From Octopus sinensis (Eukaryota): a DNA stretch of 64,000 nt. This document shows, in pieces, positions 28,415 through 45,345 of the stretch; the first letter of the stretch is position 1; each line of letters begins with the position of its first letter. The notes below the pieces were generated by a model. That model was not told the origin of the DNA. It searched no databases and saw only the letters and a program-made list of their open reading frames with translations. The position numbers and the translations under genes are program-made. The DNA is taken from positions 68,820,001-68,884,000 of the forward strand of contig NC_043004.1 of assembly GCF_006345805.1 (NCBI RefSeq). The letters run 5' to 3'.

Positions 28415-30350
28415 TCATCATTTAACATCAGTCCCCCATGCTGGTATGGGTTGGATGGCTTGACAGGAGCTCCTAAGCTAGAGGACTGAGCCAAGCCCTG
28501 ATGTCTGCTTTGGTATAGTTTTTACAGATGGATGCCCTCCTTAATGGCAACAAAATTATATCTGAATAATAAAAATATTAAGTTGTACCACTGGATGTTA
28601 TACTTCATCTTTTCACAGATCAATAACATATGTTGCTGACAAAGTATTATGGGTGCAATAAGAAGAAAAAAATATAAAAAGAAACTTGAAAATGGTAAAC
28701 CCCTGCATGGCTGCATACAAATGACGGAAACCAGTAAATTGGGGCAAGAAGGAAAATAAACTCTTAACAAAGTACAGAATTATTTTATAAAGAGACAAGA
28801 GCTAATGTTAAGAAAGATCACTGTTCGGTTTCCTCTGAAGATTTCTGTAGAGATGCTGCAATGTTGTAGAGTATTCCAATATTCTGTGGATTGTCAAGTT
28901 CATAGGCTTGTTGCCCCATCTTATTGCCAATGACAGGAATTAAGATGATTTTTCTCTTCAGTTCCAGGAAGAAAAACCTCATTTTACCTGGTGTAGCACT
29001 AAGTAGAGGTGGTCCTACTTTTGACTGAGGCTTTGGCAGTTTTGGGGATTTGGCATAAGGTTCCAGTTTTACGGACATAGACCGAAGAGTCTTGTTGAAA
29101 AGTAAAGCAGCAAATACCCTTTTCATCCTGCGATGCTGAAGCATCATCCATGGTCTGTGAACTCGGCCGTAGTCATAGCGACATGCTGCCGAACATTCCT
29201 TTAATGTTTTTGTCATAGAGTGAGGACAGTGAGAAAGGTCTAAAGATTTCTGGGATGGTTCCAGAGGCAATTTTTTGAGAATGACACAGCAAGGTCGACA
29301 ACCCTTCATCAAATGAAAGGATTTCTTCTTGGCACTTTTCGGAGGTAGTTTCAGCAAATGCCTCAACCATTTGATGGCGTCATAAGAAGGAATTCGTCTT
29401 ATAGTGCGTCCAATGAACTTTGGAGGTGGTGGTGGGTTTGCAGGAGGCTTAGCGGTTGTTTGTTTAGTTGTAGCTGCTTTTTCGGGTCTCACCACGGGTC
29501 GATCAGTCAGGGCAGCCTCTGGGTTTAAATTCAGCCTCCTTGCGGTTGCTATTGGAGATTTGGGGATGATTTTCTTCTTTTTGAAAAGGGGAGTGTTTTG
29601 CAGTGATGGTGTAGTGCGTCCCTGGAAAGACTGTAAAGTGTTCTTGGATGGAGATGAACTGGGTGACACCTTAGGGGACAGTTGTGGTGCTGGATCCGTC
29701 TAGAAAACAGGGGAAAAGAAAGAGAAAGAAATAAATGGTACAGAATAATAACCTAAAGAAACAAAATAAAATGAAATAATAAAAATTATTATTGTCATGG
29801 ATGGCATCATTATAATTATTTCTAATTAACTTTTTAATATAATACTCAGTTTTAATTATATTAACACTAACTATCAATATGTCAATATATCACTGTCATC
29901 AATTATTTCTTGTTCACCTTTTAATGTTCCTAGCATTCGTCATGATTATAATCCTCAGTTTTAATGCCAATTTTCCATGTAAGCACAGGTTGGATGAGGT
30001 CCATGGGGGGAAATTTTCTACAGTTGGATGCTTTTCCAAACAACTCTCACCTGTTTTAATGTAAGGTTAACTTTTTACCTTGGTCAGGCATATTTTCATG
30101 GAAGAATGGCAGCAAGCCATGTGATTACAAAGTGAACTTCTTAATTACTCAACCGTAAACGTATTACCTTTCCTTCTATCTGCCCCACCACATATTCTTG
30201 ATGTCAGATTTTTAATATACCGTCTACTAAATATTTCAACACTAACTATGTGTCTGTCTGTCTCACCACAATTATTTCAAGTGAGCTTTATAATACACCC
30301 GGTATCTTATATGTTAACATTAGCATAATTATGTCTGTTCGTCTATATGT
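28415..30350. repeat. Left outer arm of ~1.9-kb near-identical inverted repeat (partner 43415-45345)
   Basis: Reverse complement matches 43415-45345 with only scattered SNPs and small indels; ORF-track translations are mirrored. Confidence 0.95.
28818..29699 (-). CDS. Exon 2 of paralogue A: uncharacterised basic Lys/Pro-rich protein (294 aa with spliced ATG)
   Basis: Acceptor TTCCCCTGTTTTCTAG at 29700; open frame TDPAPQLSPKVSPSSSPSK...SSEETEQ*; protein identical to 44063..44944; all five nucleotide differences found are synonymous. Confidence 0.75.
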   Translation of the reverse strand, partial: TDPAPQLSPKVSPSSSPSKNTLQSFQGRTTPSLQNTPLFKKKKIIPKSPIATARRLNLNPEAALTDRPVVRPEKAATTKQTTAKPPANPPPPPKFIGRTIRRIPSYDAIKWLRHLLKLPPKSAKKKSFHLMKGCRPCCVILKKLPLEPSQKSLDLSHCPHSMTKTLKECSAACRYDYGRVHRPWMMLQHRRMKRVFAALLFNKTLRSMSVKLEPYAKSPKLPKPQSKVGPPLLSATPGKMRFFFLELKRKIILIPVIGNKMGQQAYELDNPQNIGILYNIAASLQKSSEETEQ

Positions 30351-31197
30351 CTAAAATAGATGTTAAATCATCTTTAAAGAATTAGTAAATTTTTGCTTTT
30401 ACTGAAATGATGATATGAAACCTGACACAAAACATTACAGCAACCAAATGCTATTCCAGTAGTTTATGCAGAAATTTTGTATCATGCTTTACAAAGCAAT
30501 GATTTGTTGTAAATGCTAAACTTTATTAAATATACACAACAAAGCTCAAAAGTTGCTCTACTATTAAATATATATATATATATATATATAAAGTTGGCAC
30601 AACTTTTAGGCCACTCTGTTGTATTTGTTTTCACCTGTTTCTTATTCTATTACTGCTGAAAAACACTGTCCAAATATTTCAATTAATTTAGGAATCCAGA
30701 ATTCAGCAGGGGTTTAGTAAAATAACTAACATTAGTCTTGTCTTTCATTCCTTCAGAATTATTAATGTAATCAACAAAATCTCCACCTGCAAAATTACTG
30801 GCTTTGTGCCAAACTTAGACAGAATTAAGCTCGCATTTTGTGCATAATTTAGTAAAGATTTTTACATAAAATCACTGGGGAATCATGTTATTTAGATATG
30901 AAGACTTGCTTGGATGCAGTTAAAAATTTACTTCCTAACAACATAGGTTTGGGTTTAGTTCCAGTGAGTGGTGCCAAGGGCAAGTGTCTTCAACTATAAC
31001 TCTAGGCCAAACAAAACTTTGTAAGCAGATTTGGTAGCTAGAATCTAAAAGAAGCCCACCATCTCTCTCTCTATATATATATATTATATATATATATAAT
31101 ATATATATATATATATATATATATATATATATATATATGTATATATATATATATATATATATATATATATATATATATATGTATATATATATATATA

Positions 31198-31421
31198 GGC
31201 GAGCTGGCAGAAACGTTAGCACGCCGGGCGAAATGCGTAGCTGTATTTCGTCTGTCGTCACGTTCCGAGTTCAAATTCCGCCGAGGTCGACTTTGCCTTC
31301 ATCCTTTCGGGGTCGATAAATTAAGTACCAGTTACACACTGGGGTCGATATAATCGACTTAATCCGTTCGTCTGTCCTTGTTTGTCCCGTCTGTGTTTAG
31401 CCCCTTGTGGGTAGTAAAGAA
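31198..31421 (+). mobile_element. SINE family A
   Basis: Same sequence as 15805-16038, inserted between (TA)n tracts. Confidence 0.85.
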
Positions 31422-43022: not shown

Positions 43023-43414
43023 AATTCTCACTATATATACATGTGTGTAGGTATATAGGTATTCATGTAGGTAGTTAGGTAATTTTCAGAAGTTACAAGA
43101 GTGACTGAAAGGTCAAAGGTGTTATGCATGGTACTTTATTAAACAGGTCAATTTGATAAGTGGCTTCATGTAGGCATTTGACTGTGGCCATGCTGGAGCA
43201 CCGCCTTTAGTCGAGGAAATCGACCCCAGGACTTATTCTTTGTAAGCCTAGTACTTATTCTATTCGTCTCTTGCGCCGAACCGCTAAGTGTCGGGGACAT
43301 AAACACACCAGCATCGGTTGTCAAGCGATGTCGGGAGGCCAAACACAGACATACACAAACAAGTAAAAGAGTATATTAAATGCAAAGAATTTAATTGTAC
43401 ATAATTGTGTGGTA

Positions 43415-45345
43415 AGACACATAAACAAACAGACATAATTATGCTAATGTTAACATATAAGATACCGGGTGTATTATAAAGCTCACTTGAAATAATTGTG
43501 GTGAGACAGACAGACACATAGTTAGTGTTGAAATATTTAGTAGACGGTATATTAAAAATCTGACATGAAGAATATGTGGTGGGACAGATAGAAGGAAAGG
43601 TAATATGTTTACGGTTGAGTAATTAAGAAGTTCACTTTGTAATCACATGGCTTGCTGCCATTCTTCCATGAAAATATGCCTGACCAAGGTAAAAGTTAAC
43701 CTTACATTAAAACAGGTGAGAGTTGTTTGGAAAAGCATCCAACTGTAGAAAATTTACCCCCATGGACCTCATCCAACCTGTGCTTACATGGAAAATTGGC
43801 ATTAAAACTATGAGGATTATAATCATGACGAATGCTAGGAACATTAAAAGGTGAACAAGAAATAATTGATGACAGTGATATATTGACATATTGATAGTTA
43901 GTGTTAATATAATTAAAACTGAGTATTATATTAAAAAGTTAATTAGAAATAATTATAATGATGCCATCCATGACAATAATAATTTTTATTATTTCATTTT
44001 ATTTTGTTTCTTTAGGTTATTATTCTGTACCATTTATTTCTTTCTCTTCCCCTGTTTTCTAGACGGATCCAGCACCACAACTGTCACCTAAGGTGTCACC
44101 GAGTTCATCGCCATCCAAGAACACTTTACAGTCTTTCCAGGGACGCACTACACCATCACTGCAAAACACTCCCCTTTTCAAAAAGAAGAAAATCATCCCC
44201 AAATCTCCAATAGCAACCGCAAGGAGGCTGAATTTAAACCCAGAGGCTGCCCTGACTGATCGACCCGTGGTGAGACCCGAAAAAGCAGCTACAACTAAAC
44301 AAACAACCGCTAAGCCTCCTGCAAACCCACCACCACCTCCAAAGTTCATTGGACGCACTATAAGACGAATTCCTTCTTATGACGCCATCAAATGGTTGAG
44401 GCATTTGTTGAAACTACCTCCAAAAAGTGCCAAGAAGAAATCCTTTCATTTGATGAAGGGTTGTCGACCTTGCTGTGTCATTCTCAAAAAATTGCCTCTG
44501 GAACCATCCCAGAAATCTTTAGACCTTTCTCACTGTCCTCACTCTATGACAAAAACATTAAAGGAATGTTCGGCAGCATGTCGCTATGACTACGGCCGAG
44601 TTCACAGACCATGGATGATGCTTCAGCATCGCAGGATGAAAAGGGTATTTGCTGCTTTACTTTTCAACAAGACTCTTCGGTCTATGTCCGTAAAACTGGA
44701 ACCTTATGCCAAATCCCCAAAACTGCCAAAGCCTCAGTCAAAAGTAGGACCACCTCTACTTAGTGCTACACCAGGTAAAATGAGGTTTTTCTTCCTGGAA
44801 CTGAAGAGAAAAATCATCTTAATTCCTGTCATTGGCAATAAGATGGGGCAACAAGCCTATGAACTTGACAATCCACAGAATATTGGAATACTCTACAACA
44901 TTGCAGCATCTCTACAGAAATCTTCAGAGGAAACCGAACAGTGATCTTTCTTAACATTAGCTCTTGTCTCTTTATAAAATAATTCTGTACTTTGTTAAGA
45001 GTTTATTTTCCTTCTTGCCCCAATTTACTGGTTTCCGTCATTTGTATGCAGCCATGCAGGGGTTTACCATTTTCAAGTTTCTTTTTATATTTTTTTCTTC
45101 TTATTGCACCCATAATACTTTGTCAGCAACATATGTTATTGATCTGTGAAAAGATGAAGTATAACATCCAGTGGTACAACTTAATATTTTTTTATTCAGA
45201 TATAATTTTGTTGCCATTAAGGAGGGCATCCATCTGTAAAAACTATACCAAAGCAGACATCAGGGCTTGGCTCAGTCCTCTAGCTTAGGAGCTCCTGTCA
45301 AGCCATCCAACTCATGCCAGCATGGGGGACAGACATTAAATGATA
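43415..45345. repeat. Right outer arm of ~1.9-kb inverted repeat
   Basis: Reverse complement of 28415-30350. Confidence 0.95.
44063..44944 (+). CDS. Exon 2 of paralogue B: uncharacterised basic Lys/Pro-rich protein
   Basis: Acceptor CTTCCCCTGTTTTCTAG ends 44062; 882-nt exon, 293 codons + TGA; about 54 K+R vs about 16 D+E by hand count; KKKK NLS-like patch; VKLE SUMO-like motif. Confidence 0.75.
   Translation, partial: TDPAPQLSPKVSPSSSPSKNTLQSFQGRTTPSLQNTPLFKKKKIIPKSPIATARRLNLNPEAALTDRPVVRPEKAATTKQTTAKPPANPPPPPKFIGRTIRRIPSYDAIKWLRHLLKLPPKSAKKKSFHLMKGCRPCCVILKKLPLEPSQKSLDLSHCPHSMTKTLKECSAACRYDYGRVHRPWMMLQHRRMKRVFAALLFNKTLRSMSVKLEPYAKSPKLPKPQSKVGPPLLSATPGKMRFFFLELKRKIILIPVIGNKMGQQAYELDNPQNIGILYNIAASLQKSSEETEQ

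Follow-up and report, generated by a model that had tools for sequence, protein, structure and literature searches.

Gene structure at the locus

We analysed a 64,000-nucleotide stretch of the Octopus sinensis genome (GCA_006345805.1, CM016866.1, near 68.84-68.87 Mb; hereafter the window) that contains two head-to-head copies, A on the minus strand and B on the plus strand, of a two-exon gene for a protein of 294 amino acids (aa). The O. sinensis locus reached through the encoded protein (L009) corresponds to window positions 49445-18818 on the reverse strand with 100% identity. In each copy, exon 1 ends in ATG|GTAAGT, where the ATG is the start codon and forms the last three bases of the exon (39443-39445, minus strand, in copy A; 41540-41542, plus strand, in copy B), and splicing in phase 0 joins it to an exon 2 of 882 nt that includes the stop codon. 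The exon-1 ATG is preceded, 15 nt upstream, by an in-frame TAA. Exon 2 occupies 28818-29699 (minus strand) in copy A and 44063-44944 (plus strand) in copy B, and in both copies its open frame follows a long polypyrimidine tract and TAG. The initial annotation, made from the sequence, had described introns of 9.7 and 2.5 kb carrying different transposons, and this description was borne out. The intron of copy A (29700-39442, minus strand) is 9743 bp long and holds many copies of short interspersed nuclear elements (SINEs) as well as microsatellites, and that of copy B (41543-44062, plus strand) is 2520 bp long and has different insertions. These lengths fit the NCBI gene spans of 10,628 and 3,405 bp, respectively.

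The ATG joined to exon 2 encodes a 294-aa protein whose exact sequence is present in NCBI/UniRef, and the NCBI annotation assigns this identical protein to both head-to-head genes, in O. sinensis and in O. vulgaris (GCA_951406725.2). In the sequence collection searched, which indexes no Octopus transcript contig across the exon 1-exon 2 junction, the exact protein was found at four NCBI genome places only, and no alternative open reading frame (ORF) forms of it were found; this weighs neither for nor against the junction. The predicted pair of divergent genes, each with a lone-ATG exon (ATG|GTAAGT at 39445 and 41540) spliced in phase 0 to an 882-nt exon, therefore agrees with an exact protein that is annotated twice at NCBI. 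The annotated 294-aa protein requires the exon-1 ATG in copy A. Exon 2 opens with the codon ACG in both copies of O. sinensis (window 44063-44065 and 29697-29699) and with ACT in a contig from another octopus (L001, ~895-897), which means that the Octopus gene model depends on the ATG that closes exon 1. The corresponding Argonauta codon (contig L002, 10001-10003) is ATG and is the annotated start.

Relatives of the gene favour a structure of two exons. For a 443-aa homologue from a more distant cephalopod (P0003), the Logan contig L004 is a spliced transcript, whose first 89 nt replace the intron of the genomic contig L003. The junction between the two contigs falls exactly at a CAG acceptor, one base before an ATG, such that a 5' untranslated region (UTR) exon is joined just upstream of the start codon in this animal. 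In the annotated coding sequence of Argonauta hians, the ATG immediately follows the CAG acceptor, and the acceptor site is kept in Argonauta and in L001. It thus appears that the start codon shifted across the intron between Argonauta and Octopus. A 30-nt block that is perfectly conserved around ATG|GTAAGT was considered as proof of a constrained splice site and rejected, as we estimate that such a run is not rare at ~82% identity over 500 bp; it gives weak support at most.

The motif AGTCGCCATGTT occurs upstream of both first exons (41431-41442, plus strand; 39543-39554, minus strand), as well as 3 kb upstream of Argonauta exon 2 (L002, 6966-6977) and at the 5' end of the distant-cephalopod transcript (L004, 5-16). 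This sharing supports the interpretation that the sequences around the two first exons are the gene's true promoter and exon 1. The motif, which is YY1-like by inspection, is probably a core promoter or start-site element. The start codons are 2.1 kb apart and the conserved promoter motifs ~1.9 kb apart (41431 and 39554), each within its own inverted arm (see below). Bidirectional-promoter pairs have start sites less than ~1 kb apart and a shared promoter region, and the locus is therefore not such a pair.

Two pairs of inverted arms with unequal divergence

Arms were detected by an inverted-repeat scan combined with BLAST of the left half of the window against the reverse complement of the right half, which returned two inverted arm pairs, an outer and an inner one. 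The outer arms (28409-30352 and 45352-43415) are 98.5% identical in inverted orientation over 1946 alignment columns, with 19 mismatches and 4 gap openings. Besides exon 2, outer arm A (28409-30352, minus strand) includes 653 bp of intron and 409 bp of downstream sequence; in outer arm B (43415-45352, plus strand), the corresponding lengths are 648 bp and 408 bp. The near-identity of ~1.9-kb arms that include intron and downstream flank had already been proposed, and the alignment upholds it.

Each inner arm contains an old SINE-derived piece, the promoter and exon 1; inner arm A (38831-39870, minus strand) also covers the first ~600 bp of the intron, and inner arm B (41120-42308, plus strand) the start of the intron. 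The two align in three collinear blocks with BLAST identities of 77-82%: 39368-39870 with 41621-41120, 39151-39334 with 42138-41956, and 38831-39018 with 42308-42128. The exon-1 arms of the initial annotation lie where these blocks are; their extent needed correction, in that homology reaches ~200 bp further upstream, to 39870 and 41120, into the old SINE-derived piece. At their upstream ends, both inner arms consist of older SINE-like copies (39684-39828 and 41024-41299).

Between the inner arms lies a central spacer of 1.25 kb (39871-41119), which lacks detectable arm homology and includes a SINE at 40509-40913. Neither in this spacer nor past the arm ends did we find arm-to-arm homology, with local alignment scores no higher than those of shuffled sequences. 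For each arm core, the sole second copy within the 64-kb window is its partner, and the arm cores are therefore not dispersed repeats. One BLAST match outside the arms (27410-27565 with 49034-48881) lies in fragments of long interspersed nuclear elements (LINEs) and was excluded from the palindrome.

The two arm pairs differ sharply in divergence. Kimura two-parameter (K2P) distances between copies A and B are 0.16-0.20 in the inner arms, compared to 0.011 in the intron part of the outer arm (98.9% identical; 648 bp), 0.006 in exon 2 and 0.017 in the 3' part (98.3% identical). Overall, the A/B divergence is ~1% in the outer arms versus ~18% in the promoter arms, and exon 1 has many positions at which the copies differ. 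The exon-1 arms are thus much more diverged than the exon-2 arms (0.16-0.20 versus 0.006-0.017), as had been apparent by eye, and identity followed along the arms is sharply unequal between the arm pairs, so that uniform divergence was not seen.

Grouping of the arms by species and by paralogue

The locus of O. vulgaris (L008, GCA_951406725.2) is collinear with the window at 95-98.6% identity. We therefore aligned both copies from both species (A_sin, B_sin, A_vul and B_vul), with L001 as the outgroup. Over the whole outer arm, the divergence is 0.98% for A_sin-B_sin, 2.06% for A_vul-B_vul, 1.80% for A_sin-A_vul and 1.19% for B_sin-B_vul; the outer arms differ from each other at 19 sites in O. 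sinensis and at 40 in O. vulgaris (98.5% versus 97.9% identity).

These differences are distributed unevenly along the arm. We treated the arm interior (43431-44095 and 44116-45190; 1736 bp) separately from the edges and an island within exon 2 (43415-43430, 44096-44115 and 45191-45352). In the interior, A_sin and B_sin differ at 7 sites, A_vul and B_vul at 27, A_sin and A_vul at 31, and B_sin and B_vul at 22. The counts in the edges and island are 12, 13, 3 and 1 in the same order, and 12-13 A/B differences are found there in all four cross-copy comparisons. Thus, in the interior, the two O. sinensis copies are closer to each other than either is to its orthologue (7 versus 31 and 22), which is clear in that species, and the O. 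vulgaris paralogues are about as distant (27 sites) as the orthologues. The distal edge of outer arm B (45191-45352, plus strand; partner 28409-28570) carries A/B differences that are common to both species and is unconverted, and the intron-side edge (43415-43430) and the island at 44101-44110 show the same pattern. With these unconverted edges and its island of 10 bp, the homogenised block is in turn a mosaic.

Phylogenetically informative sites gave a concordant result. In the arm interior, 10 sites are species-type, none is paralogue-type and 1 is cross; in the edges and the island at 44101-44110, 11 are paralogue-type and none is species-type; and in the inner arms, 301 are paralogue-type, with no species-type or cross sites. 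The order of site types along the arm falls into 5 runs in 21 sites (permutation p = 0.0027). The initial annotation had predicted that converted copies would cluster by species at exon 2 and by paralogue at exon 1, and with O. vulgaris as the second species, this is the pattern obtained (10:0 in the exon-2 arm interior and 301:0 in the exon-1 arms). Orthologue divergence is similar in both arm classes (1.5-2.0% in the inner and 1.2-1.8% in the outer arms), and therefore rate differences cannot explain the 10-20-fold contrast in A/B divergence.

The outgroup also indicated a direction of transfer. Polarisation of the 10 species-type sites by L001 assigned the derived state to O. sinensis at 6 and to O. 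vulgaris at 3; 1 site did not polarise. Of the 14 A_vul singletons that could be polarised, 10 match the outgroup L001; at these positions, A_sin therefore has derived bases in common with the B lineage, which indicates B-to-A transfer in O. sinensis. Taken with the block distances, these site patterns strongly indicate that the exon-2 block was homogenised again in O. sinensis after the species split. The ten B-lineage derived states that were apparently copied into A_sin include 6 AT-to-GC changes and 1 GC-to-AT change, which is a weak hint of GC-biased conversion in a region of 38% GC.

A strongly constrained cephalopod protein

All four copies, A and B of both species, encode the identical protein, and 11 of 11 variable coding sites are synonymous, as are all 5 of the sites at which the O. 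sinensis exon-2 copies differ (synonymous divergence, dS, of 0.024). The ratio of nonsynonymous to synonymous divergence (dN/dS) is 0.09-0.12 in comparisons with L001 and Argonauta. The gene is thus real and under strong purifying selection.

A word-indexed search gave three matches, all of cephalopod type: P0001 from another octopus (92% amino-acid identity), P0002 from Argonauta (80%) and P0003 from the more distant cephalopod (53%). Extending the search by profile to 1.84 billion representative proteins added no relatives to these three clusters; a Pfam search gave no domain match, and a sequence-profile search of the PDB returned noise only (E = 0.77). The gene had been called an orphan, and it has no homologue outside cephalopods and no known domain in these searches; its retention in Argonauta and in a more distant cephalopod means that it is restricted to cephalopods and not to Octopus. 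The protein is basic (isoelectric point 10.5) and rich in Ser, Pro and Thr, with conserved Cys/His positions and a highly conserved C-terminus. An AlphaFold2 model from an alignment of four sequences was unreliable, with a mean predicted local distance difference test score of 41.9 and a predicted template modelling score of 0.24. A literature search for LOC115215028 gave no match. The pair thereby flags a strongly constrained, cephalopod-only basic protein that is kept in two identical copies.

A probable old inverted duplication with a repeatedly converted coding block

We conclude, at a probability of roughly 85%, that the pair arose by an old inverted duplication, after which the exon-2 block was repeatedly homogenised by gene conversion and the promoter block escaped. 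The unconverted sequence, comprising the inner arms as well as the final 37 bp of the outer arm (with 7 A/B differences in these 37 bp), is ~10 times as diverged between A and B as O. sinensis is from O. vulgaris, and the duplication is therefore old. Argonauta has one copy and one annotated protein, with no inverted partner within 10 kb on either side, which places the duplication within the octopus lineage. The ends of the 2,073-bp L001 contig adjoin transposon sequence, and copy number in that species is not readable from them. The duplication probably took place after the split of octopus from Argonauta and long before that of O. sinensis from O. vulgaris. It was probably a single inverted head-to-head event involving a unit of ~3.5 kb that ran from the promoter through both exons and the intron between them into ~400 bp of 3' flank. 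In this gene, exon 1 consists of 5' UTR and the ATG, and the rest of the coding sequence sits in one large exon. Inner arm, transposons and outer arm account for almost the whole intron of copy B, and this composition fits a single contiguous ancestral unit of ~3.5 kb.

Transposons would subsequently have filled the introns and left two separate blocks of homology. The converted block stops at the points where insertions end homology. The 1.9-kb exon-2 block would have been repeatedly homogenised through non-reciprocal copying between the inverted arms, for which the likely mechanism is intrachromosomal gene conversion, that is, non-crossover double-strand-break repair templated by the other arm. 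A_vul and B_vul are only 2% apart, which implies that the two exon-2 blocks were being kept similar even before the species diverged. Copying appears to have gone on after that split, mostly from B into A in O. sinensis and in a few short tracts only in O. vulgaris. The promoter/exon-1 block was apparently spared and could thereby have reached its ~16-20% divergence; candidate causes of its escape are interruption by insertions and deletions, too much divergence for recombination, and/or selection on regulation. The outcome is two genes with an identical 294-aa protein and with promoters that are diverged yet recognisably homologous.

This history retains most of what the initial annotation had proposed. 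An old duplication with recent or ongoing arm-to-arm conversion agrees with the site differences (7 versus 22-31) and the species-type sites (10:0). The limitation of conversion to the coding exon was too narrow, as the homogenised block spans 1.9 kb and takes in intron and 3' flank. The idea that one protein is driven by two diverged promoters holds for the identical 294-aa product and for the divergence of the promoter arms, with the qualification that core promoter blocks are still retained. A further proposal is that selection maintains the boundary between converted and unconverted sequence, in that the promoters have distinct expression roles, a single identical protein is preserved by conversion, by purifying selection or by both, and the transposon-filled introns insulate regulatory divergence from conversion; we consider this doubtful.

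Several points weigh against a history of single duplication and repeated conversion. The outer and inner arms have no detectable homology to each other, and the single duplication is deduced from collinearity and symmetry. A GENECONV-like permutation of the longest run was borderline for the A_sin/B_sin pair (p = 0.065), and the case for conversion was accordingly built on site patterns and block distances rather than on the longest-run test. In O. vulgaris, post-speciation conversion is based on 3 shared-derived sites. The Octopus splice junction and the use of both promoters are taken from NCBI annotation and homology. Finally, the data are assemblies, and near-identical arms can be made falsely alike when long-read assemblies are polished with short reads, which would inflate the species-type signal.

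The last point leads to the alternative that one inverted arm is false, or that the arms were made alike by consensus polishing, to which near-identical 2-kb repeats are prone. Against it, two assemblies from two species share the architecture, the intron-specific insertions and 11 paralogue-specific differences, and the arms remain distinct, with 19 differing sites in O. sinensis and 40 in O. vulgaris. Moreover, the arms are far shorter than long reads, so that reads anchor in unique flanks, and inner arms with 16-20% divergence cannot be the product of collapse. A gross assembly artefact is thus unlikely, and we hold either form of artefact to be a very improbable source of the pattern. The strong constraint on the protein (dN/dS ~0.1, four identical copies) could suggest that purifying selection keeps the exon-2 arms alike with no exchange of sequence. 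The intron part (98.9%) and the 3' flank (98.3%) are as similar as the coding part, and near-identity across 648 bp of intron and ~240 bp of 3' flank means that purifying selection alone is insufficient. In addition, dS between the copies is 0.024, compared to K ~0.18 in unconverted blocks, and the species-type sites include non-coding and synonymous positions. We therefore regard selection without exchange as refuted by the non-coding identity, and its probability as negligible.

A two-step origin calls for more discussion. Here, an old duplication would have made the promoter/exon-1 arms, and one large re-duplication or replacement of exon 2 shortly before speciation would have been followed by independent divergence. 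The arm ends are abrupt, no homology links outer to inner arms, the A_vul-B_vul distance of 2.06% approximates the orthologue divergence, and incomplete duplications are known to mimic conversion (PMC3966223), all of which would fit. By contrast, this origin does not account for 10 interior species-type sites with derived states in both copies of one species, for the 10 B-lineage states in A_sin, or for A_sin and B_sin differing at 7 sites where orthologues differ at 22-31. A/B differences that predate speciation persist at the edges and in the 10-bp exon island, which gives a mosaic rather than one clean event, and the make-up of the copy B intron fits one contiguous ancestral unit. Two separate steps consequently seem to us improbable, and we favour a single inverted duplication with repeated conversion.

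Comparison with known systems and significance

Hsp70Aa and Hsp70Ab of Drosophila are one inverted paralogue pair that evolves in concert. In Caenorhabditis elegans, interlocus conversion has been described for adjacent inverted paralogues, namely the 1.9-kb inverted modules of hsp16-1/hsp16-48, col-12/col-13 and hsp70-7/-8 (PMC3966223). The octopus genes resemble the C. elegans pairs in that the paralogues are close and inverted, are nearly identical over the ORF and adjoining intron or flank with far more diverged surroundings, and group within species and not with their orthologues. Unlike in C. elegans, the octopus block lies at the 3' end of the gene, with a transposon-filled intron between it and its own promoter, and the promoter and coding block of one gene therefore have different histories. 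In addition, the octopus gene is cephalopod-restricted and not a stress gene.

In human alpha-globin, conversion acts within duplication units made of homology blocks X, Y and Z that are parted by non-homologous elements, and gamma-globin conversion tracts are similar. The octopus pair is like alpha-globin in having conversion within discrete homology blocks bounded by inserted or non-homologous sequence, such that coding sequences are identical and flanks diverge. It differs in that the globin duplicates are direct and have their promoters inside the homogenised block, whereas the octopus copies are inverted and have their promoters outside it.

Arm-to-arm conversion is also known from the palindromes of mammalian sex chromosomes, such as P1-P8 of the human Y and the palindromes of the X (PMC3723533, PMC8981503, PMC8600007). 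As in these, inverted arms surround a unique spacer, identity above 98% is kept by intrachromosomal conversion, and arms group by species, which is the hallmark of arm-to-arm conversion in large palindromes and was found here. By contrast, the octopus arms measure 1.94 kb rather than more than 8-10 kb and up to megabases, their identity is 98-99% rather than above 99.9%, and the octopus spacer holds the genes' own promoters and first exons as well as an older, diverged arm pair. Large palindromes are defined by arms of at least ~8-10 kb with more than 99% identity, and the octopus arms, with 98.5% identity in O. sinensis and 97.9% in O. vulgaris, fall below both values. The octopus Z chromosome is chr16 in O. 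vulgaris and LG20 in O. sinensis (10.1101/2024.12.09.627507), and the locus is probably autosomal.

The pair is a clean but ordinary case of concerted evolution and involves no new mechanism. It resolves conversion after speciation well, and does so in a cephalopod, a group in whose genomes concerted evolution is hardly documented; a literature search found nothing on octopus gene conversion or on this gene. The promoter and coding block of one gene differ ~10-fold in apparent age, and dating octopus duplicates by coding divergence would misdate this pair (dS of 0.024 versus a true K of ~0.18). If the outer arms crossed over with each other, the 13-kb middle would be inverted and each promoter would be joined to the other exon 2, with both genes left intact, such that the locus could flip neutrally.

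Transposons and other features of the window

Between the arms, multi-copy SINE-like elements and microsatellites are interspersed with unique sequence. A SINE-like family of ~400 bp has at least 9 copies with 80-96% identity, including those at 40509-40913, 42522-42904, 35981-36374, 9298-9702 and 22238-22647. A foldback insertion resembling a miniature inverted-repeat transposable element (41698-41948), with perfect terminal inverted repeats of 33 nt, is present in the intron of copy B only, in both species, and its internal tandem repeat of 21-23 bp is much longer in O. vulgaris. A piece of ~150 bp (31281-31427 with 42493-42317) is collinear with the palindrome at 92-95% identity and has further copies in the window (also 37069-37156); 31281-31427 and 42317-42493 could be a partly converted old intron fragment or independent transposon copies. 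The long intron of copy A also contains three copies of a 63-bp tandem repeat with 94% identity (31759-31948), and a related element of ~480 bp lies downstream of copy B in O. vulgaris (L008, 1817-2285).

Outside the gene pair, a LINE retrotransposon at 53799-59411 encodes endonuclease, reverse-transcriptase and zf-RVT domains and has an upstream ORF with a weak zinc-knuckle match; degraded fragments of a similar LINE are at 14402-15388 and 27143-27688. Two long plus-strand ORFs have no clear family match (17724-18191 and 10445-11122) and may be exons of a neighbouring gene. The ORF at 17724-18191 weakly matches (E = 0.06) the DXD sugar-binding region of glycosyltransferases.

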